From Asterias rubens (taxonomy: Eukaryota), in assembly GCF_902459465.1 (NCBI RefSeq), contig NC_047080.1:12462001-12526000 (forward strand): 64,000 bases of DNA, in the 5' to 3' direction. Of the stretch, positions 4,301-59,100 are shown in pieces. Below the pieces are notes generated by a model. It made no database searches and was not told the DNA's origin. It worked only from the letters and a program-made list of their open reading frames with translations. Numbering within the stretch: the first letter of the stretch is position 1; every line of letters starts with the position of its first letter. Both the position numbers and the translations under genes were made by a program.

Positions 4301-7300
4301 TCAATTAGGTTAAAAATTATTCAGTACTTCATTATTTTTGTTACGGTGGATCCAAACGTAGGAACTCAACATGCGGATTATAATGCAGTTTATGCATATC
4401 AACCAGCAAACTGCTTCAAAATTATTAAAATGAGATTCAATTTCTCAATTTATATTTCGTTTCAGCGAAGGGAATTGAACATCAGTTGGATTCCTGATTA
4501 AACCTCGTCAACGATCCCATCAAATTATAACGGTGTAGAAAAAATTTAAAAACAGTAAAAGAATAAAGGGGGAAATTGCCCGAGGGACAGGGCTTGGTTA
4601 GAACTGTCCGGGGTAGAATGATGGAGTGATTCAGCATGGCTTTAGATACAACCAAAGCGTATTAAAAATCATCAATCAGTATTGAGGGATTTTATTTCCT
4701 CCCTTGAAAAAAGAAAATGGATGAAACTTGAACAGTGACGATTTCACATTTTGTCAGCTTAGAGCTAAATAGGAAATATAGTTTTTTTGTGGATTAAACA
4801 AAACATATAGTTACATAGCAACAAAATATTGTGGGTTATAATCAGTTTAGCATGCAGACTTAAAAGTTGCCAGTTGACTTTATGCTTGAGTAAAAGGGTC
4901 TGAATACGTTTGGTAATGACTCTGAAAATTTATGGCAATACAAACTAGTTTGGATAGAAGTATCAAATTGGGAATCTTGTTCACTTTGAAGTACTGCAAT
5001 TATGGAAAAAGTCACCACTTTTTATTAATAATGCATGATTTATGAATCGGTTCTCAAGTGTTTACGTCCTTGCATCATACTGTTCAAAAAAAGTGACTGT
5101 TTTATTTACATTATCTGAGTCTGCATAAATCCCTTTAAAGTTTAGTCTTGAAAATGGTCGGGAAGAGGAAGAAAAACATCTTAAAGGAAGTAGCGTTTCC
5201 CTCGACTAGAAATGAAAGGCAGGTAAAATTCAATTTAATAGACTAATAACGTTACCATGGTGATGTGAGTGACGTTATGGGTTGAGCAGCTAATTGCAGA
5301 ACGGGGAAGAATACAGAAAAGAGAAGAGTTGTTTGTAGAAGGAATACTAACAATACAGGGTAGACCTTACCTAAATGTATCAACACTTATTGCAGGTTGG
5401 CATAGGTTATAATATCATTCAAAACCACATTTGGATGGTATTGAATGGTCAGACAGTAGGAGGGTTGACTTTGTACTGTGTAGTATGCATTCACCACAAT
5501 TGCAGACTGACATGGTTTATTATTCATATTATGAATTATATTGAATGGTCAGACAGTAGGAGGGTTGACTTTGTACTGTGTAGTATGCATTCACCACAAT
5601 TGCAGACTGACATGGTTTATTATTCATATTATGAATTATATTGAATGGTCAGACAGTAGGAGGGTTGACTTTGTACTGTGTAGTATGCATTCACCACAAT
5701 TGCAGACTGGCATATTGTATTATTTATATTATGAATGGTATTGAATGGTCAGACAGTAGGAGGGTTGACTTTGTACTGTGTATATGCATTCAACACAATT
5801 GCAGACTGGCATGGTTTATTATTCATATTATGAATTATATTGAATGGTCAGACAGTAGGAGGGTTGACTTTGTACTGTGTAGTATGCATTCAACACAATT
5901 GCAGACTGGCATAGTTTATTATTTATATTATGAATGGTACTGAATGGTCAGACAGTAGGAGGGTTGACTTTGTACTGTGTAGTATGCATTCACCACAATT
6001 GCAGACTGGCATGGTTTATTATTCATATTTAATGAATGACAGTGAGTGGTCAGACAGTACAAGGATTAAATCAGAAATTGAATAAGCTCTATATATGAGA
6101 ACATTATCCCTGAGTTCATGTCAAGATATTTAAATGACCCCTGAATAAACTCTTTCATTTGAACTGGATGAATATTTACTTACCTTGATGCAAACACACA
6201 GGGAGAATGGACATGTAAACAAGACGATAAGCATTGACAGACCGGTGAGGATCCATCCACAAATACCAATGCCCCCTTCAGGTTCACCAGCTAGGAGAGG
6301 AACAAGAGAATAAATGCTTTACTAAATCATTCAATTTGATATGAACGCTCTCATTGTTATCTGCCAGTTGTGGTACAACCTGTGCATATAAAACTATATG
6401 TGTGCATTCAAAATATCACACCCTACCTATTACAGGTTGCAAATAGCCCAGGTTGGACTCCTCCATTAACACTGGAAAACATCCTACCTGGGCTAGCTGA
6501 CAGAGTGCATGGTTTTTAAATGATCGGACAGTAGGAGTGTTGGCTGTGTTATGCATAAACGTCATGATATTGCAGCCTGGCGTTGTGTATCTGATATCCA
6601 AAACCACAGTAGGTGATATTAAATGGTCCAATAGTAGGAGGGTTGAGTGAATGCTGAGGTGATAAGTTTAACACTTCGCAGGATGGTCTAGTGTAGCTTT
6701 CAATCAATAGAAGGGTTGACATAAGAACCAATAGCTGAAGTGCTATCTGCTGGGCCCAGTTTAATAAGCACTTTAGAGCAGAACAACAGCCAATATACTT
6801 CGAGTCCAACTATGAGGTTTGTTCTGCTATTCGTTCTGCTATCATCTCAACAACAGCGGAACAAAGTTCGGATAACTGTCCATATGCCAGATGGGGCCAC
6901 CACTTTTTCACTCATTTTTACAAAAAGGGATATCTCATTGAGGTAAATTAGATACTATATCATTTCATATCGAATGAAAAAGCGGTGGCGCCATACGGAA
7001 ACTTTTCCCAAAGTTCCCATAATTTTGCATTGTTTGTGACTGGTTCCCTGCTTCATTCCTGCTTTCAAACAGAATAATTCAAAACTTTACGAAACTGGAC
7101 GCTATTGTCAGCCAAGTCAAAATATAGGCCTAGTACTAGTACTAGTAGGCAGATTTCCCAAAGCACTACCACTACTAGACCCATGGAGGTAGAAATAGCT
7201 ACACCTCACAAAAAGGAGATGGTCGAACTTTGCTAATAAGAATTTAAATCTTAGCTCTCTTGAGAAACTGAGCTTGTTGAACTGTTTGTAAAATATAACA

Positions 7301-39460: not shown

Positions 39461-47168
<7,708 letters not shown>

Positions 47169-47229
47169 GTTGTCAGTCAGAGGATAATAATAACAAGAGA
47201 GGGCGCTTTCCAAAAAGAGCAAAAACTGG

Positions 47230-47491
47230 GCCATTATCAAATTTACCTAAACTTTACCTAGTTGTATTAATGTCTTTTTATGTGACGCAAGCTCGGTACA
47301 TACAGTAGTATGTACCTGTACTGTGCGTCCACTCTCTGTTTTTTTTCTGCGGAGGACTAGAAACAAGTTGAGTGCCCGCGAAATCTTCAGACCTATTCTT
47401 AGTAAGTGTGGTCTGAATTTGTTATGGTAAGAAATATAACCATAAATGACCTCGAAATACCGTTGAAAAGCCATTCAAAGAACAAGTAAGT
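47230..47491. promoter_or_regulatory. Putative bidirectional promoter between GPR107 and the transposase gene, ending in a candidate non-coding-exon donor
   Basis: CpG-containing stretch just upstream of the GPR107 ATG, CRE-like tgacgca, palindrome ggtacatac-agta-gtatgtacc, and + strand donor caa|gtaagt at 47486. Function is inferred. Confidence 0.4.
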
Positions 47492-47981
47492 TGTATTTTA
47501 AATTAAAGACTATCTCTGTGTTCGTTAAAACGGGTTGAATCTACAATCGTGCAATGTTGAAAATAAATAGTTGTTGGAATGTCATTTTTTTAAATAAAAA
47601 CAAAAAGTTCTAGCCCACTTGTCATGCTTGGGAGGGCGGGGGATAACTTTGTTGGGGGGGGGGACTCTGTCAGGGTGCGTCTTTGTGCAAGTTTTAGTGG
47701 GTGACTTAATTATTGTAATGGGCGACTTTGCTGAAAAGGGGGGGGGGGGGAGGGCGGGGCCTCATTGAACAGTGCTCCAGACCAGACCAGGGTATGGTGT
47801 GAGGTGAGGGTGGGCAGCTCGATGATGTCTTGTCTTGAGGAAGCTCATCAGAGTCGTTCATGTTCTTAGTCTTGTAAATTTCTTGTAATCTCTTCATTAA
47901 TTCCACTTTGAGAAAGACAGTTTTGTATAAAGCACTCTTTTTTTCAAATCACATTTTCTTTTGATCTGTTCCAGATTCAAG

Positions 47982-50900
47982 ATGGAAAAACACAGAGAAA
48001 TTCTCCAGCGGTTGTGTAGACTCTGCGGGGAGCGATCCATATCATCAGCCAACTCCAAGAAGGGAAAAGTTGCAAAGCTCTGCTCTAACTACATCGAGAA
48101 AATCGCTGACTCATTCCAAGTCGACATCTCCCATGACGATACAAACATTCACCCCCCACATATGTGCCACACATGTTATACTCGCCTTTATCTCCGTGGC
48201 AAGAAAACCGCCCCAACCTGGGGTTCCCATACGATAACAGGCGTCTGCCCTGTGTGCACTTATTCAATCCAACATCTAAGCTCTGGTCGTAAAAAGAGAA
48301 AGAAACATCCAGGGATTGGTCGACCTAGGATAACCCCTACAGAGTTCTTTAACAGTCTACCCCAGTCCCCAACAGTCTCAAGAGAGAAGATGCTTAACTT
48401 CGAACCACTGTCCTATACTTCCCCCATACTATGTAAAATTTGCAACAGGTCGCTTAACAACGCATTGGAAACAAGCTGCATGCATTTATTCTGTTGTGAA
48501 TGCTTGACAGAGCGCTATGAAACTTCTGGAGAGCGCATTCTCCCATGCCCAACATGTCGAAAACCAGTAGACTTCAAACACGTAGTGACCCCCCGTCTGT
48601 ATTTTGCCTCGTTATTTTTAAGTACAATAATGACATGTAAGGCATGCAAAGTGGGTGTCCCTTTGGGTGATATCTCTTCTCATGGTTGTGATCCAAAAGT
48701 CAGTAGTGGTCCTTCTGGTAATCCCAACTTGATGTTTTTCATCGTCAAACCACCCGAGAAACAAGTTAGTGAAGTTGTGGAGATGATGCATCGTCCATTG
48801 ACTGCACCTCTAACTCCCCAAATGGAAGAACTTGGCTCACATATTCTCAAATCCAAGCTGGCACAATCTTCAGATGGATTTAGCACTCGGTACAAGACAG
48901 CTGGCTTGGTAAGCTTTAGTCAACCTTCACTTCACTAAAGAAAAAAAGGTTTGAACAAGTGAAGAATACCTTGTTGAAAGATTTTATTTTCTTTTTCCCC
49001 TCCCCCTCTCCCTTCTACAAAGCCTCTGACAACAGTGTGCATTCCTAGTCCACGAAAAAGCAGTGAGGTTGCCTCTAGTAAAACTCTGCGACGACGCTCT
49101 GAGATTTTAAACAAGACACGCAATCTTCTTTCCATGGGTACTTCTAGGCGGCAGCACCTTGATGAGCTGAAGTTAAGCAGTTTGAGAGATGACCTTCAGG
49201 AGACGTTGAAGGAACTCAAGTTAGACTCTATCAGGCTTCCTAGCATGCAGCTTCTTGCAGCAAAGGCACGTTTTGGAATCTCCTGGAAACGCATCAGGGA
49301 AATGAAACGATGGCTGAAGAGTTACAACATACTAACAGAAGGTGAGAATGCAATGCGTCAACAACAGAAAGACATCGTTGCAAGTAACATCATTGCAGAG
49401 AACCTTCCGTTTTCATTCCCAGATGAAGTCAATGGAGGAGTCACCATCAAGCCCGCCGCTTGTGTAGGTGTGAAGTCACTCGTTGCTAAAGTCACCCAAC
49501 AGTTTGAGGAATACCATAAGTAAGTAAAACTTAATTTATCTTGTCTTTGAACCAGCGTTGAAATCTTCAAAGAAATAATCCACTCATTTGTCTTGTTCTT
49601 TTTTCTTCAGGGCTGGACAGCTCACATGGCACGAGGGCAACATTCCAGCTGATGAGGTCTGGATTAAAATAGGCGGTGACAAAGGAGGCGGAACCTTTAA
49701 ACAGATGTTCCAAATTGCCAATATCGATTGCCCCAACTGCCTTCGACATACTGTTGTCGCTTGTGCGTTTGCAGCGGGGGATAAGTACGACAATCTCAAG
49801 ACTGGTCTGTTACGCTTCCGTCAGCAAGTCGTTGATCTGCAGTCCTGTACTTTGAAGAGTCATAAAATCAGACTCTTTATGTTTGGAGATTACGAGTATC
49901 TCACCCGAGTGTATGGACTATCAGGTGCTTCAGGTAATTGATATGCTTCAGGCTTTGAAAATTATACATAAACTTTGGGCCTAACTGTCATCACTTTTAC
50001 ATGGAGCCACAACTGTCAAACGGCTTGATAAAGATTTACGCTATAACCTGTGCTTAGCTTAAAACTGCAAATCTGCTGTAATACTAAAGCCATGCTTTGC
50101 AGTATAGGACATCTCATATAGATGATTCTGTAAATTAACCTCCCCACTGACTTTTAGAATATTAGCAGAGTGTAATTGGTCAAAGATCTGTCTCTTTGTG
50201 AAACCTAAAGAGAGATGTTTGCTTTTTTTGTGTACACAGGACGACACTGCTGTCTCTACTGTGAGGTCTCTAAAGATGATATGAGCTTACCCCAGGAGGA
50301 AAGGCCAGCAACTAGGCAGAGAACTATGGACACCCTGAACAACGACCTGGCCAGATTTGTTGCTGATGGCAGTAAACTCTCCCATGCAAAACACTTCAAC
50401 AATGTGATTAGTCCGCCAATGTTCCGGCTTCCACTTACACAGGTCAGCATGTTTCCTCACTCGACATTTGTAACAGACCATGCTTAGCACCCACCATGCT
50501 TAGTACCCATCATGCCTAGCACCCACCATGCTTTCATAGCACCCACCATGCGTAGCACCCACCATGCTTAGATCCCATCATGCTTAGCACCCACCATGCT
50601 TAGCACCCAACATGCTTAGCACCCACCATGCTTATTAGCACGCACCATGCTTAGCACCCACCATGCTTATTAGCACGCACCATGCTTAGCACCCATCATG
50701 CCAAGCAAAAAGTTTGAGGCACCTGTCTCCAGATCATTCAACTCTGGGCATCAAATGTTTTATGGTAATAGTGGTTTCATGTAACGCTCATGAGGACACT
50801 CCAACACTATTACCATTAAGTCATTAAGTGTAGAAACAAATCAATTTGTTCTCTCTTTATAATCTTGTTGTTTCAAAAGGTCTGCCCACCCGGACTTCAC

Positions 50901-52501
50901 ATTAGTCTGGGGTTATATCTCAAACATTTCAACAGCTTCGAGAGGGCATGTCATGATCTTGACATGGAAGTGGCAGCTGTGTTAGCCGTGCAAAAAGAAC
51001 AGCAATCTGAGGCAGACAATCCAGCTCTTGGCTCCACGTTCAAGAATGTTGTCTCAGTATTGAAGAAGGCTAGGCAGTTAGAGTTGCAGGCAGAGGGCTT
51101 AGATGAGGAGATCCAGATCAAAGAAGAGGAACTCATGGACATCATTATGACATCTGAGGAAGAGGAGGAAAGTGCCGATATTGGGAATTACATCGCTGGG
51201 ACGACATTATTACGAGAGCAAAAAGAACGTCTGGTAAGGCATCTTCAATTTTAAATTAAAGAAGTGTGTCGTTAAGGAGGATTTGAATACTTTGCATTAT
51301 GTGAAGTTTGTGTAGACACCATATACTAAAATAACTGAATATCTTCAGGAGAATGCTGGATGCTGCTACTGGATGCTGCTTAAGAACTGCCCTAAAGGTT
51401 TTACTAACGGGTACGCTTAGCTCAATGGGATGTACTTGAGCAGCATACAGCAACAGCATTCTGAGCGAAATGTCTTTAAACCACTGGTTCTTTTTAGAAA
51501 TATCCAAACTCCGAGTTTTATGTACTTGGTGTCTCCACAAACTTTGCTAGAAATGTGTGTTTGTAACAGCGACAATTGGACTCACATGACTATTAAATTT
51601 ATCATTGTAACTTATTTATTTCCCCCGTCAGTTGGCAGAAGTGAAGGCCCTTCGTGATAAAGCAGCCCTGAAACCGGGTCAAGGTCCTCTAGCTGGTTTA
51701 CTCGACATTGTACTCCAGGAGTTCCGGGTTCAGCGACAAGCTTTTGGTTTTGTTGGCAACCATGTCCACAAATGCTGCAAGGTAAGCAGTGTCATAATTC
51801 TTATACAACTTCAAACTTTTAAAGAAAACTGCACAAGTAAATATTAAGTCGTATGGTTCCCGCTCTTCCAGAGGTTGTTAATAGACTGAAACACCAAATC
51901 AAAACCTGGGTGAACACATCTGTTTACTTTGTTCAACTGTTGATTTCCCCTTTACAGCACTTCGAAACCTCACAGTGATATGCGCTATAAAAAAATGATT
52001 TCTTTATTTATTTGAAAACATCTTCTTTTGTTGCAGGAAGAAAATATCAAGCGTCTGACTGATGCGGTGGTCAGTAAAACTCAAGAACTTTGTCCTTCAC
52101 TGGAGGGGGAAGCTAGAGAAATCTCTACGAAGTATTCCAAACTATTCAACCTGTTTGGAACTTGTCATAGGAAGTACAATGTAGCATTCGTCCTCAATGA
52201 CCAAGCCATAGATACATTAAACCAAGACATACGCAACTACCTGGCGTTTTTCCGTTCCTCTTTTCCAAGTGAGACCGTGACTCCGAAGATGCATCTCCTT
52301 GAGCAACATGTCATCCCGTGGTTGCGGCGGTGGCGCTTTGGTTTAGGTTTCCATGGGGAGCACGGTGGGGAGTCTGTCCATGCCCATTTCAACACCCTCC
52401 GGCGTGATGTCCGAGGAATGAGCACAGATGTGGACATACTACGGTCTGTAATGCAGACTCACTGGGTCGCTACAAGCCCTGCCTATACTATTTCTAGATA
52501 A
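47982..52501 (+). CDS. Intact spliced DDE transposase with RAG1-type N-terminus (Chapa zinc finger + RING + zinc finger); Chapaev / N-RAG-TP-like, RAG1/Transib-related fold; ~972 aa, 7 coding exons
   Basis: Exons 47982-48908, 49023-49519, 49611-49933, 50240-50442, 50880-51233, 51632-51781, 52037-52501 (2919 nt, GT-AG, phases consistent, no stops). Motifs: H-X7-CRLCG..D-X4-H-X4-C-X2-C..W-X2-H..CPVC; RING CKIC..CMHLFCCEC..CPTC; CKAC..H; basic PRKSSEVASSKTLRRRS; D1 KIGGDKGGG; D2 FMFGDYEYLTRVYGLSGASGRHCCLYC; PPGLHISLG; GNHVHK; TPKMHLLEQH; E in GEHGGESVH. Confidence 0.9.
50476..50702. repeat. ~16-bp unit minisatellite (accatgcttagcaccc) in intron 4 of the transposase gene
   Basis: About 13 variable copies directly visible. 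Confidence 0.9.
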
Positions 52502-54117
52502 TTGTTTAATATCTGTTAAAACACATCTCCGTCTTTTTATGCTAAATATCTTGCTAACTTCAATTTATACAATTTCACAGATGAGGTTTAAATATTTCTA
52601 TTTGACATGACAATGACTACTTGACATGTTTAAAACTCTTTGGGTCATGTCAGTCCAAGCATGCTTATGTACTAAATTAGTAGAGGGCAGTATATAAGAT
52701 GAGTGGGATACTCCCAACGTCTCTTTTCTTTTATAAGTCAAATAATTTAGAAGCTCCGTATGTTTTGGTAAGCTTTTTTTTGCCTAGAATGCTAAAATAT
52801 TGGACTGGGTGCAGAAGTCCAGTGAATATTTTTAGCCCTTGGCTCTATCTAATCCACAAAGCAATAGTGACTGGCACCTTAAACAAAGATATTGACTAAG
52901 GAGACTGGGGTATAGGGTTAGAGCTCAGTTGGTACATTAACCTGGACTCCAGGTTGCAGGTTCAAGTATTGCTCTAGTAACTAGACTAAGACTACTGATA
53001 TTGATTGATGTGTCACTGGAGTAAATTAGATTATTGACATCAAACTTGTGACTTAAACAGCAAACGATACACAAACTTCTGAAGTGAAAATACTTCTATG
53101 AAGATCTTTTGTAGCAGTGTGGATTTGACCTTGAGAGTCGGGTAATTCAATAAGTTGCGATTTGGTTATGAGCGACAAAATTTCATCTTAGGAGTTCTGT
53201 AAAATGATTGTTTATAATAATTTACAGAAAATCTTGCTACGCAGATACAGGTTACCAGCTGCCATGCCACAGAGGTTGAATTATTGCAACTGGTGGCTAC
53301 TGGCTAACTCATTTTCTGCTTAGCAAAGAAATTGGTTGAACTTATGTGTAAATTTGTTTTTGTTTTAATTCATGATAATTAACTATTTTGATTTTTAAAT
53401 ACTGTACTGTTGACTTTGTGCACAAGATCCAAATTTGGCTACTGGTTGCAATGTCACCATTTTGTGGGTGTCAGTTATCGCATGAAAAAAGTGTTGAGAC
53501 TCAGTATAAATGTAAATGCTGTGTCTCCTAAATTGAGCACTACACTCTCCAGGCATTGACTCCCAAAATGATGCAACAAAAATTATTGTGATGATGATGT
53601 CATATGAATTGGCTCTATAGATGTTTTTTGAACCACCAACACTAATAATTTATCTCAACATATTCAGTATTACTTCTTCTTATTAACAGTATTTACCAGT
53701 AGTTGTGGGGGTTTCCTCTGCTCTGGATGTAATTCCTACATTGTTTCTAAAGTATTTGTTTACCTTTTTTATGTAGTTTCTTTACTTATGAGTTTGTTTA
53801 CCTTTTTTAGTTCCTTTACTTATCATTCATTATTTGTATTAGAATCAAGTCCATATTTACTGTATAAATAAACTGCTAATAAAATTGTTCCAAACTTATT
53901 TTTTAAGTGCAACTCTCTATTTTCTCCCTACATCACAGCCTCAACTTTGCCTCTATAATTTTATTTATGCACTTCAATTAAATTTCAATTACATTTTAGT
54001 GGACTTTCCTCAACTTTATTTACCATAAAACTTTATGAACAACGTCACATTTTTGTGTTGAATATTCATAACCTAAATAACCAAGTATCAGCTGGTAGTC
54101 AGCTGTCCATTTAATAC

Positions 54118-54702
54118 AGGCATTCGCTCAATCTTCAAATTGCGCTGCTAATTTGAGGTTTTTAGCACATTGCGTTTATTTCGCAGGTTGCGCGCTGGAC
54201 AACTTGAAGGTACAACAAACCATAGAGGAAGGACAGAGACAAACAGATGGGGGCGGGGGGGGGGGGTTACAAGGGGGGAAGGCCAGGACACTTGATTATA
54301 TACAGAAAAAGTACAAAAGATGCTCAAGTTTGAATCACAGAAGCTGAGACAATGAACTTGAAGGCGGTGGTCAATTTATGCGGTTTGGGATGATGGGGTT
54401 TTCGTGGAGGAGGAATATAAATCCCCATGATCCATTGTAATTTTAGTGTACCCTTGTTTATTTTCCTGGGTGCTGCCTGCGCCCCCCGTGGGGAGCTTGG
54501 GGGGGGGGGGGGTGGGGTTTGACATTTCCTAGATAAATAAAATTATATTATATTTAGTTTCTGAATGTTATTTCCAAAAACTTTGAGTGAACTTTTAAAC
54601 TTGAGCAGCATCGTTTTCTGCTCAACTCAAATTTGCTGAATTGAGCGCTCAATATGCAGAATGATCAAAATCGCGCCCAATCTTCAGATTGAGCAAATTC
54701 CT
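54118..54702. mobile_element. Possible degenerate MITE upstream of ABCA2
   Basis: aggcattcgctcaatcttcaaattgcgc versus the reverse complement of gcgcccaatcttcagattgagcaaattcct; imperfect, no TSD. Confidence 0.35.
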
Positions 54703-55427
54703 AAAAGGCACATTGACTTGTGTGGTCCCCGCACGCACACACACACGCAACAATGCACAAACGACAAACGTCAGGTAGGGTATAGACGTGTGTTGTCAAA
54801 CAAGAAAATTATGTCAAAGTTTTAACTTTAAAATGGTTTAAGATCTGATCAATTGAAGCCAAGACGCTGGATTCTATGCAACACAAAGGTAGGTTACAAT
54901 CATATTATAATAAATTCAGGTAAATACTTTTGTAAATAGTGAAAATTTGATCGAGTTTTCTTCTTCTCAATCTCAATCTTGTCAAAAAAACAAAAAACCA
55001 GAGCAAACATTTCAACTGAGTACACACGACGTACCACAGCACAATCAGTCAGTCGTTGAGCTTTGAGGAGGCGGCTTTGATGAGACTAGACATTCACAAC
55101 CAACAAACACCTCCATAATAATAACATAGGATGATAACATCATGGATGATAACATCGACAAACCATGGAGGTAGACAAACGAAATAAATAATTGAATTGA
55201 ATTGAAGTCAGACAGAAGTGGGCTGTCCTGTGTGTGTCACTCACAGTGTGATTGTGAATGTGACAATTAAATAGAGCAGACAGTTGTCTACGACTTGATC
55301 ATGTTGACTTCTCCTTTATCAGTTCATGATATTGAGATTCAGCCTGCTTTTTCCATTGAGAGTTTCCGGGCACCCCAATTTGACAATCTACCCCACCCCC
55401 CCAGCCCGTAAAAAGTGCCCCCCAAAC

Positions 55428-55553
55428 TAGACCCAGTAACTGGGGCGCTGTACTCCTTTTTTCAAAATTTTGTGACATTCTCGGTCGTACAGTACGACCG
55501 AGAATGTCAAAATTTCGAAAAACAGGAGTACAGCGCCCCAGTTACTAGGTCTA
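55428..55553. mobile_element. Foldback MITE with TAG...CTA termini and 9-bp TSD
   Basis: tagacccagtaactggggcgctgtactcc ... ggagtacagcgccccagttactaggtcta, central palindrome around cggtcgtacagtacgaccg, flanked by cccccaaac at 55419-55427 and 55554-55562. Confidence 0.9.
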
Positions 55554-55585
55554 CCCCCAAACAAACATTTTATTAAACCCAAAAC

Positions 55586-55721
55586 CGGGAAAAGTTTCTG
55601 TATGGCGCCACCACTTTTTCATTCGATATAAAATAATATAGGAACTTATTTACCTGATTGATATATCCCTTTTTGTAAAAATGAGTGAAAAAGTGGTGGC
55701 GCCATATGGAAAGTTATCCCA
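55586..55721. mobile_element. MITE, copy 2 of the 6867-7012 family (opposite orientation)
   Basis: gggaaaagtttctgtatggcgccaccactttttca ... tgaaaaagtggtggcgccatatggaaagttatccc. Confidence 0.75.
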
Positions 55722-56157
55722 AAACTATTCTCATAATTCATAAAACATCATGGACAATTTGTCGTACTTGTCATCATGGTTGTAGACGTAGGTCTTCATA
55801 TATTAACCCTAAAGACAAGTGATGAGGGTATTCGCTTAATTTAGTGGAGTATAATTATCCAGATCCAGATAAATCTACGTGATGACATGAGTCGTGATTA
55901 TTGACATTAATTTTATATAATTTTAAACAAGCAAGACTACAATTGAATTATTCCACCTACAGCAATAGCAGCTACCATAGTCATTTGTCTATTTTTTACT
56001 TCCATTTTTGTCCTTCAGGTTGTCATCAGTGAAAGTAAAAGTGTGTGAATATGCAATCCCTCGTCTCGGACAGCGTCAAACAGTTATGTTGAGTAGTTTT
56101 AGGATACGCATATAAAGAGCTGGATTTCGGCAGCACTGCCTGAGGCAGATCAACATC

Positions 56158-59100
56158 ATGAAGTTCTTTCATCAGCTTCAAGTTCTTCTGTGGAAGAACT
56201 TCGTGTTGAAGAAGAGAAGTCCTGTAAGTTAACGCATTCTGTTTCCCCACGCTCTCGTTTGTTTGTGAAGTATTAAATTTGGCTGGATAGGCTTTCTCCG
56301 GCAAAGACCAAATATCCACTTCCTTAGGCCCCCTATGCCTTTTTATTTTTATTCACTGTAAGATTCTAAAACAAAGAACTTGGCTCGATTTATTTCACAA
56401 GCACTGTAACACAGTTCATTTTAAGATTAGTTGTGGTATTGCCATACTACGGGTAGTGATTTGTATTGTGACACGTCACACTTTGCTTTGCAGTTAAGAT
56501 TGATTCACACTTGACATGAAATAAGCCCTTTGTGAAATTGCCTTCTCTGGACCAAAATGCATAGCACTGATTATTGCCTGTTTTCATGGAATTTCCATTT
56601 CAATCATAGCGCTGCAAAATGTTAAGAAAAGGCACAAGAATTGTTCAAATTGGTGGTATGCAACTAGGGCTGGATGGCCTTGTAATCGGGCATTTGTAGC
56701 CATATAGGTGTAGTCCCCAATTCAGATAGGGCATAACTCATAGATTTTGCAACCATGTTGGCTTGAGTTTTACCCAAATAATCAAAATACCCATAACATG
56801 TACACTTCTGATATTTATTCCAGGTGACAACGATATTTGAAACCCTCATCCCGTTGGTGCTGTTTGTTATACTCCTCTTCATTCGAAGGAAGCAGCCATC
56901 AATACCTGTGGGTCAAAGTAAGTCATGATCTTTGACACCAAATCCCTGACCCACACTATAAATGGTTACAATGTCCAGGAACTACATGACTAGTGTTAAG
57001 GGGAGCCCTAGGTTATGTTTTAAATGTACGCATCCCCTTTAAAAGGTGATCTCTTTCCTGCTTCTTCCAAGGTTGTATTTTAAACTTGGGTGTGATCCCT
57101 GGCTACACGGGCCCGGGAGCTAACAGTCTGCCTGGCACCCCCTACCAAGATATTGGCAGAGTAGGGAAACCACCGACAGTAGGGTTAGATAGCTCAATTA
57201 CTGGTAGAGTGCCGGTTATTAAATTCAGAGGTTGTGGGCTTAAATCCTGCCAAGTTTTATTTGAGCTTTTCTGTGACATTTTCCCCTGTTGTTGTTGGTT
57301 TGTTGTTGTTGTTATTTTTCCCACTGCAATGAGACTATTGCTTTCCGATATCAGTCTGATTTTGTATTCTCTCCCCCCCTCCCTCCCCCCAGCCTACTTC
57401 TCAGCGATGCCACTACCATCCTCTGGAATCATTCCTGTTTTACAGACGTTCTGTCCGTCGTATGAAAGGGACCCGTTTGGATTCCCTAATCATCCAAACT
57501 CTGGGTAAGAACCTCCTCTTTCTATCCAAAAAAACAATGTCTACAAGTAGTGACCCCTAAATTTGCCTTTTATAAAGCAAAATGGAGGGTTAACAAAAAG
57601 TTAATGATGCATAACCTTGACTAGCGTTAATTCATCAGCATAATATTTTGGTTTGGGTTCATTCCACTCCTTAACTTGCAGATTCAAATTTGCCTGTTTA
57701 GTTTAGTTGTGACCAAATGGTCCAAGTAGTTCATTGACCCTTACAGTCACAATTTCTTCTATTCAATTGTCATGAAGTGAAGGATTTAGAAGGACTGGGG
57801 CTTGTAGGCCCATTAATCAAATCCACAGTGTCAGAATTCCATAGATTTGCTTCATGTATAAGCACACAAGTCAAATAGTAGTGGAGCACAGAACACTTTT
57901 GCTTTTTAATAAAGGTTAAGTTTGCATTGGTTTTTGCTCTGAAACTGATCTATATTAAGCAGACTCAGTACTTTTCTGAGGTTTGTGATCTTTTGTTAAA
58001 GTCAAACTAGCATCTGTGACTGTGTTTTTTGTTATTAAGCAGAACATGTTTCAGAATTTGTTTTCTGCCCATGATGTTTTCAACTTTAACCCACAAATGA
58101 GGGTTTATTGAGGCAAGAAAGATGTCTGACATAGCCCAGAACACTATTGTGTCTTATCTTATCATGTTGACCTTGTAGCTTCAATATTCAGAGGTCAAGT
58201 TTCATTGTTCTGTCAGAAATGTCCGCGATTACATTTCATGGTATGTGTTGTTTTTGGTCTGAAAGCCTAACAATCAGACAACAATGAATATCCTTCAAGA
58301 CCTTCTTGGTTTCATGTTTTCTACAACTATGAAGGGGACTGAAAATACAATGCATTCAAACTGTCAAAGTGTTCAAAAGTGGGGGAAGAAAATCTCAGAA
58401 ACTACATGTAGCTTATGAAATATTTAACTGCTCACTCTTTCAAGAAAATAGAATAAATATACATACATAAGTAAATTATTTTTTGTAAATAGAAATAAAT
58501 TAAAATCTATACTGTCAGACAACTCTGCGAAATCTAGAGCCAGCGAAACATGATGTTATACTCCCTCCCATACATATTGTGTTGGTTTTTAGAACTGTCT
58601 GGGGGGGGGGGGAGGTGGCTTCCTTCTCAATGCCCTAAAACAGGCTCTCAAGGTGAATGCCATAATAATAATGAGAAAAGAGGTTGGTAAGAGAAAGAAA
58701 ATATTTATAACAAAAGTTTCAGAGTGGAGCATAATTTAAATCAGGTCTTAGTTAAACTCATTTTCCTCAGACATTTTCTGCTTAGTAAAAACCTCACAGA
58801 TGATGTGTGTGGAATTGTTACATGTTTAATGTAGGCAGACTCTCTGTTATTTACCTCCTTGTTAAATTATGTTGGCAGCTCTGGTATAGCAAAAAGTACA
58901 ACGACAACGATAACTAATTGTTTCATCAGCCATGTTGAATTCCATTTGTGACAGTGTCCTTAAAAATAAATACATTCCACACTGCAATTAAACAATTCTG
59001 TTTCCATAATGATTCTTTCAACATCTCTTGGACAGCTGGAACCCCCCCCCCCCAACCCCAAACTGCAAAACATGTCCCATATGCCTATTTTAAATGTCAT

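Follow-up and report, generated by a model that had tools for sequence, protein, structure and literature searches.

Whether the sea star Asterias rubens keeps a transposase of the RAG1 type as a gene of its own, or carries in its place a transposon that is still mobile or already decaying, is the question raised by a gene at positions 47982–52501 of the stretch analyzed here, that is, 64,000 nucleotides of the forward strand of contig NC_047080.1 (12,462,001 to 12,526,000; hereafter designated the window). A reading of the letters alone (hereafter, the original prediction) had described it as an intact, seven-exon transposase gene of the RAG1-N/Chapaev type with no visible transposon ends, and had proposed a host-retained recombinase that arose in parallel to the domestication of RAG. 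The gene, LOC117303111, is certainly an intact gene for a Chapaev-family transposase with the RAG1 fold. Its protein is a member of the Chapaev family, and the locus is not a recognizable transposon; that the gene is retained by the host, as an immobilized and possibly domesticated copy kept open by selection, is a proposition on which we find the scales level.

The observation of an intact, seven-exon RAG1-like Chapaev gene was confirmed in detail. Thus, the seven exons (Table 1) represent the sole join of the open blocks on the + strand at 47982–52501 that uses consensus splice sites; all six introns are of the GT-AG type with good polypyrimidine tracts, and the spliced coding sequence (2919 nt; 972 codons plus stop) contains no internal stop. 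The 972-residue product is 100% identical to residues 24–995 of the A. rubens RefSeq protein XP_033643095.1 (P0184), and the gene is already annotated, but only as "uncharacterized". Residues are numbered here as in the 972-residue product, the numbering of P0184 being higher by 23. The product also aligns end to end (1–972 against 1–946; 39% identity) with a 951-residue homolog from the crinoid Antedon mediterranea (P0009), the exon junctions falling in sequence colinear with it, and the junction 48908|49023 is matched exactly by an intron-less junction in a contig from another species (L002, described below). The window DNA is 100% identical to A. rubens LR699110.1 of assembly GCA_902459465.3 (L010, corresponding to window 37424–62501).

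The family assignment rests on domain matches, conserved residues, and phylogeny. In Pfam searches with the full protein, DUF1280 (PF06918) scored 61.8 bits (cutoff, 25; P0184 residues 380–575), RAG1_imp_bd (PF12560) 27.7 bits (cutoff, 23.3), and zf-C3HC4 (PF00097) 23.1 bits (cutoff, 21); exon 3 alone matched PF06918 at 6.6e-12. DUF1280 is the Pfam family of Chapaev transposases and has been reported to cluster with RAG1 (PMC3985635), and the hallmarks of Chapaev are a DDE triad, the motifs C(2)C, LH, and H(4)H, CAC...GTG termini, and target-site duplications (TSDs) of 3–4 bp (PMC4079192; motifs cited there from Yuan & Wessler 2011). In the family alignment of 42 sequences, each column of which is covered by 36–39 of them, D498, D568, C587, C590, H657, H904, H909, E930, and H933 are invariant wherever the column is covered (C587/C590 in 38 of 38), and L656 is kept in 38 of 39 covering homologs. 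Together with the PF06918 score, these residues bear out the Chapaev-type transposase and the three acidic catalytic positions of the original prediction. Moreover, a maximum-likelihood tree placed the window gene inside an echinoderm Chapaev clade with support of 100/100. A search with exon 7 gave 1246 cluster representatives at E ≤ 1e-3, the named members being crinoid, sea urchin, sea cucumber, lancelet, and sponge proteins. NCBIfam searches and single-exon PDB sequence searches of the core were uninformative, and the window protein was absent from the returns of searches with P0009 and with the exon-seeded alignment, being found via a 90% cluster listing.

The order Chapa zinc finger, then RING, occurs in two Chapaev subgroups and otherwise in RAG1 alone (PMC4411706; bioRxiv 10.64898/2026.01.24.700457), and Kapitonov and Koonin regarded Chapaev as a distantly related clade within the Transib superfamily (PMC4411706). 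The window protein shares with these Chapaev proteins (Repbase subgroups from lancelet and sea anemone; Kapitonov & Jurka 2007; PMC4411706) the same domain order (Chapa zinc finger, RING, and DDE core), DUF1280, and the C(2)C, LH, and H(4)H motifs, whereas the window copy differs in having no detectable terminal inverted repeats (TIRs) or TSD, in being apparently single-copy, and in having an extra upstream coding exon and expanded introns.

The relationship to RAG1 was evident in sequence for the N-terminal part. Exon 1 matched residues 103–372 of mouse RAG1 in a phmmer search (E 8.5e-8), and the family profile matched RAG1 101–490, the GGRPR region included (E 5.8e-14), as well as the solved NZD structure 21WB (E 8.2e-13). 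In the core, two weak colinear profile stretches pair FGD with RAG1 D708, CxxC with C727/C730, HxxxxH with H937/H942, and GES with E962; individually these stretches are insignificant (independent E-values, 240 and 570), and no RAG1 core Pfam family was matched by the full protein at E ≤ 0.001. An AlphaFold2 model of P0184 built on the 42-sequence alignment had a mean predicted local distance difference test score of 84.3, with most of the core above 90, and the top 49 matches to it in the PDB by Foldseek were all RAG1, BbRAGL, or HzTransib (best E, 2.7e-15). Superposition by VIA-align placed model residues 402–995 on mouse RAG1 460–1003 with Z 28.8 (458 residues; root-mean-square deviation, 3.8 Å; about 15% identity), on BbRAGL with Z 25.6, and on HzTransib with Z 24.7 (397 residues; 3.5 Å), the next fold being that of the P element transposase (Z 12.7). 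The RING region of the model superposed on the RAG1 RING/ZFA dimerization domain 1rmd with Z 9.8 (106 residues; 29% identity). Thus, the weak core sequence match and the superposition of the whole core together indicate that the modeled window protein is colinear with full-length RAG1 in fold but is not in the RAG1 sequence family, in agreement with previous reports (PMC4411706, PMC3985635). The RAG1-like N-terminus and the zinc ligands parallel to RAG1 C727/C730/H937/H942, both claimed at the outset from the letters, hold on these sequence and fold matches; the structural comparison with RAG1 and HzTransib suggested there gives a match of the core to both.

In RAG1 and in RAG1L/ProtoRAG (BbRAGL), the NZD/Chapa finger, RING/ZFA, NBD-like linker, and core follow one another in the same order as in the window protein (core Z, 25.6–28.8). 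The catalytic D/D/E, CxxC, and HxxxxH have equivalents in RAG1, with a D-to-C spacing of 19 residues in both proteins and an H-to-E spacing of 21 in the window protein versus 20 in RAG1. The differences lie in the core identity of about 15%, the first aspartate, which is set in KIGGD, the absence of a RAG2-like partner, and the Pfam classification, which is not RAG1. Transib (HzTransib; PDB 6PQN/6PQX) has the same core fold as the window protein at a sequence identity of about 10%, and, unlike it, is without the Chapa/NZD and RING N-terminus (PMC4411706; bioRxiv 10.64898/2026.01.24.700457). N-RAG-TP of Aplysia californica, a transposon-borne sequence like the RAG1 N-terminus (Panchin & Moroz 2008, as cited in PMC8355894), is likened to the window protein here by that description only.

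These comparisons bear on the idea that the window gene is an orthodox RAG1L of the kind paired with RAG2L in echinoderms. The N-terminal similarity to RAG1 and the whole-core fold match would fit it, and related sea cucumber proteins are even labeled "V(D)J recombination activating protein 1" in GenBank. Nevertheless, it is PF06918, and not a RAG1 core family, that the protein matches; the core is only 15% identical to RAG1; the gene falls inside the 100/100 echinoderm Chapaev clade; no RAG2-like gene lies nearby, the neighbors being a GPR107-like and an ABCA-like gene; and the sister element of the window gene (see below), which has no open reading frame (ORF) of ≥70 aa in its 2.7-kb 3' part, makes TSDs of 4 bp, as opposed to 5 bp for RAG1/RAG1L. 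An orthodox, Transib-type and RAG2L-paired gene, already doubted in the original prediction, is refuted by the Chapaev assignment and is hardly credible. Of the RAG2-independent nuclease/E3-ligase also proposed there, the part that stands is the absence of a RAG2-like partner, the nuclease and E3 activities being presumptive. The sea cucumber proteins so labeled, P0005 (KAJ8018657.1) and P0207 (KAJ8018665.1) of Holothuria leucospilota, both appear to be of the Chapaev type: P0207 has DUF1280 at 70 bits and is placed in the echinoderm Chapaev clade, and P0005, in which Pfam finds only a RING, is 33% identical to exon 1 and belongs to the 90% cluster of P0207.

How a mobile relative of the window gene looks could be seen in the same genome. 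The 974-residue protein P0189 (XP_033627441.1 and identical proteins), found in the 90% cluster of a 58%-identical match to exon 1, is encoded at at least five A. rubens loci (L005–L009; LR699096.1, LR699101.1, LR699105.1; LOC117299518, LOC117290256, and others). These loci share a 7.94-kb block of 99.5–99.9% identity (e.g., L005 8549–16489), in which the similarity ends abruptly at 5'-CACGTAG... and ...CTACGTG-3' and which is flanked by 4-bp TSDs at three independent sites (AAAA, GACA, and ACAT). The block contains a single seven-exon transposase gene, with 1.45 kb from its 5' end to the ATG, and a 174-bp tandem repeat (L005 13852–14335); it is a textbook young autonomous Chapaev transposon. 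P0189 and the window protein share 68% identity along their full length and are sisters in the tree.

The two genes have all six intron positions in common, with exons of 927/497/323/203/354/150/465 nt and introns of 114/91/306/437/398/255 bp in the window gene versus 918/497/323/203/348/159/477 nt and 160/92/82/109/315/111 bp in the active element, exons 2, 3, and 4 being of the same length. Because the seven-exon structure was therefore inherited from the transposon, the introns are uninformative on domestication, and the argument that six introns suggest it fails. The active element differs from the window gene in its copy number, defined termini, TSDs, and compact introns. DNA similarity between the two is confined to the seven exons; none was found between the flanks or introns of the window gene and the non-coding parts of the element, nor is any expected at their synonymous divergence (dS) of about 1.2.

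Two arrangements of related copies were also observed. On LR699101.1 (~6.576–6.613 Mb; L006/L009), the active element occurs twice in the same orientation, at a distance of 13.2 kb, with a tandem array of ~110-bp period between the two copies; one alignment begins 260 bp inside the 5' end, and an inverted 260-bp piece stands beside the other copy, which may reflect a local rearrangement or a nested insertion. On the 16,081-bp contig ENA ERZ26222911, a related Chapaev gene (P0004; exon 1 51% identical) occurs three times in head-to-tail order at a spacing of about 4.09 kb. Its ORFs are split in a pattern resembling that of the window gene, and the arrangement may represent either a true tandem array or an artefact of long reads.

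Corresponding ends were sought around the window gene. In a blind scan for TIRs with TSDs, every position of 45000–47982 was combined with every position of 52502–57000 (4-bp TSD; at least 8 of 12 TIR matches), giving 33 candidates, none of them starting with CAC, versus 23–35 in five control region pairs. From the GPR107-like start codon to the ABCA-like gene there are 270 CAC...GTG pairs, none of which combines a strong TIR match with a TSD: the sole pair with a 4-bp TSD matches at only 5 of 10 TIR positions, and the two pairs with 9 of 10 matches, found when no TSD was required, have none. An inverted-repeat search of 44000–57000 gave only weak or AT-rich pairs. The statement that no inverted CAC/GTG pair with a TSD is present is thus upheld, candidate counts being equal to those of the controls, and the inverted-repeat check likewise revealed no convincing ends. 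The best pair, 47616/55821 (CACTTGTC; 8 of the 9 matching positions in a row), was rejected as element ends, as it does not extend beyond 10 bp, is flanked by AGCC versus ATGA, and lies within chance expectation (about 0.3 such pairs); an isolated exact CTACGTG at 55875 was also within chance as a terminus. Two adjacent hairpin-forming inverted repeats with arms of 44 and 38 nt occur at 55428–55722, the second of which belongs to a ~140-bp repeat with copies at window 6867–7009 and L005 16982–17128. This repeat resembles a miniature inverted-repeat transposable element (MITE) and has no relation to the Chapaev gene.

The protein clusters speak for a single copy. The 90% cluster of the window protein consists of this RefSeq protein and environmental ORF fragments only, the contigs of which map to this locus at 98.5–99.8% identity, with at most one contig shown per sample and no diverged paralogs; the cluster of the sister protein P0189 has 22 members on many contigs. 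Among exon 1 matches between 58% and 99% identity, no other copy of the window lineage was found except L002, which is from another species.

Still, the gene might belong to a low-copy, perhaps single-copy, autonomous Chapaev of an older sub-lineage, the short ends of which go unrecognized for want of a second copy, with selection for mobility preserving the transposase. Since Chapaev TIRs may span only 7 bp, the ends of a single copy are hard to recognize; indeed, the sister lineage is alive in this genome with perfect TIRs of only that length, and the pair 47616/55821 would give an element of 8.2 kb, near the 7.94 kb of the sister. In the other species, represented by JACSEG contigs, both lineages likewise occur, under nearly the same constraint (see below). 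Against this stand the scans, in which no strong CAC...GTG pair had a TSD and candidates were no more frequent than in controls, the failure of 47616/55821 to extend, and the lack of any further copy in A. rubens among the clusters and matches surveyed; in addition, the gene begins only 255–813 bp from the start codon of the GPR107-like gene, as compared with the 1.45 kb of 5' sequence in the sister. On balance, continued mobility seems rather unlikely.

Selection on the window lineage was estimated with L002 (JACSEG010037927.1 of GCA_014845345.1, taken as a metagenome assembly), which is 86.5–88.4% identical to the window gene in nucleotides and groups with it at 100/100; being only 1170 bp long, it is a homolog and not an established ortholog. 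Over 321 codons, dS was 0.395 and the nonsynonymous divergence (dN) 0.074, giving a dN/dS ratio (omega) of 0.19, and the terminal protein branches of the two were symmetric (0.066 for the window and 0.070 for L002). As a control, L013, which is of the active lineage in the same assembly (88–90% nucleotide identity to the active element), gave an omega of 0.16 over 479 codons (dS 0.217). Thus, purifying selection on the window lineage is real but the same as on a vertically persisting active Chapaev, and omega cannot separate host from transposon selection. Consequently, dN/dS, suggested in the original prediction as a check, was well below 1 but was rejected as a discriminator.

L002 lacks intron 1 exactly at 48908|49023 (L002:534) and keeps intron 2 at about 81% identity. 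Such a precise loss implies recombination with a spliced transcript and independently confirms this junction. Its end (L002:971–1170) folds back as an inverted copy of window 49475–49676, probably as an assembly artefact.

By our own arithmetic, a dN of about 0.037 on the window branch leaves room for only ~1–4% neutral divergence in the window copy. This figure bears on a further explanation, namely, that the gene is a recently immobilized relic, which lost its ends by deletion or rearrangement and is drifting toward a pseudogene, being intact only for lack of time. Short TIRs and TSDs should mostly survive at such a divergence and a source copy should be visible, but neither was seen, which favors selection at the locus over a drifting relic; a relic would have had to shed both ends and all its source copies in so short a span. 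Introns 3–6 have each grown by 83–328 bp, one with a minisatellite, which suggests long residence with the ORF and all 12 splice sites intact, and the upstream coding exon of the RefSeq model would be left unexplained.

What speaks for a relic comes from natural variation. An environmental contig (L001; SOLA22-1 scaffold_359516; 99.5% identical over 1217 bp) has TGT changed to TGA at codon 236 (L001:911, window 48689), ahead of the core, a codon taken for Trp by the metagenome gene caller, which applied another genetic code; the change was seen in one metagenome only and might be erroneous. The real coding variants across environmental contigs were four missense (N24D, G73A, I639N at a conserved position, and E835D) and one nonsense (C236*), against two synonymous ones, countable only where contig DNA is present; the ratio fits constraint or neutrality, the numbers being too small to separate an omega of 0.2 from neutrality. 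Most of the apparent protein differences among the cluster members were discarded, as they arose from alternative start codons or from TGA translated as W. Taken together, we regard a decaying relic as distinctly improbable.

Retention by the host is favored by the combination of an apparently single copy, the lack of ends, an upstream exon beside a host gene, and symmetric, constrained branches with expanded introns. The RefSeq model of P0184 is 23 residues longer at the N-terminus than the 972-residue product by virtue of this exon, which, as read from the sequence, has a donor at 47486/47487 (CAA|GTAAGT) and is spliced to an acceptor at 47974/47975 (...TTCCAG|A), seven bases 5' of the ATG used in the 972-codon model. 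The GPR107-like gene is arranged head to head with LOC117303111, its start codon (47168, minus strand) being separated from that of the RefSeq model (47424) by 255 bp and from the main ATG by 813 bp. P0189 has no counterpart of the upstream exon, and this host-side feature, absent from the transposon, speaks for host retention.

Several of the points given above weigh against this reading: the inherited introns, an omega no different from that of the active lineage, the brevity of L002, the stop allele, and the variant ratio, as well as the 7-bp TIRs and the near-perfect pair 47616/55821, by which ends might be overlooked. Of the host-retained parallel to RAG that had been proposed, the intact core, the lack of detectable ends, and the apparently single copy stand, whereas introns and omega are not evidence for it. 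Domestication is accordingly a candidate, to be held with as much doubt as belief, and not a demonstrated parallel to RAG.

If LOC117303111 was indeed retained, it would have lost the transposon ends and become a single-copy gene between the GPR107-like and ABCA-like genes, transcribed presumably from the short region shared with the former. Its predicted layout, a Chapa/NZD zinc finger, RING, NBD-like linker, and RAG1/Transib-fold DDE core with ZnC2 and ZnH2 sites, suggests that the protein may still cut DNA by the nick-then-hairpin chemistry of RAG1/Transib without a RAG2-like partner; the RING may act as an E3 ligase, as in RAG1, and the protein may still recognize the CACGTAG ends of the active sister element. 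In its fullest form, the proposal would be that asteriid sea stars keep a single-copy, end-less, and catalytically intact Chapaev recombinase with a RAG1-like layout and a promoter shared with the GPR107-like gene, alongside a mobile sister whose CACGTAG ends it might cut or regulate, that is, an independent, RAG2-free recruitment of a RAG1-fold enzyme with the parental transposon still alive. We put this forward tentatively, as doubtful though worth entertaining.

Table 1 Features of LOC117303111 and its flanks (window coordinates)
Feature	Position	Strand	Content
Upstream coding exon, RefSeq model	47424–47486	+	21 codons (20 whole and 2 nt of a split codon)
5' flank and first intron	47169–47981		Without transposon terminus; without similarity to the 1.45-kb 5' part of the active paralog
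Exon 1	47982–48908	+	aa 1–309; Chapa/NZD zinc finger (~aa 1–110), basic stretch, C3HC4 RING and ZFA-like finger (~aa 133–242)
Exon 2	49023–49519	+	aa 310–475; basic helical NBD-like linker and start of core
Exon 3	49611–49933	+	D498 in KIGGD (49678–49680), D568 in FGD (49888–49890); end of DUF1280 match
Exon 4	50240–50442	+	C(2)C zinc motif: C587 (50251–50253), C590 (50260–50262)
Exon 5	50880–51233	+	LH motif, L656 H657 (50895–50900), then long helical insertion
Exon 6	51632–51781	+	aa 769–818; colinear with Antedon P0009
Exon 7	52037–52501	+	H(4)H: H904 (52292–52294), H909 (52307–52309); E930 (52370–52372), H933, stop codon
3' flank up to ABCA-like gene	52502–56157		Without transposon terminus and without second ORF of note; unrelated MITE-like repeat (~55587–55722); isolated CTACGTG (55875)

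Two tandem repeats were observed in and near the gene. The minisatellite in intron 4 (50477–50701) consists of about 13 copies of a 16-bp unit, ACCATGCTTAGCACCC, and is polymorphic in length, contig L011 being without 35 bp at 50611–50645. A near-perfect 29-bp tandem repeat of 10 copies (43765–44054; 99% matches) lies inside the GPR107-like gene on the minus strand and is apparently intronic.

No transposon proteins other than Chapaev transposases are known to have the N-terminal zinc finger and RING of RAG1, and the model indicates that the whole core of such a Chapa and RING Chapaev protein also superposes on RAG1. The A. rubens genome offers a natural pair, an active 7.94-kb element with defined ends and a 68%-identical, end-less, apparently single-copy gene beside host genes. 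If the gene is not host-retained, it would be an ordinary orphaned transposase, and the active element would still be a useful, well-delimited reference for Chapaev. If host retention is true, the gene would provide a tractable model of RAG-like domestication in its early phase and a biochemical test bed for whether an enzyme of the RAG1 fold can do without a RAG2-like partner.

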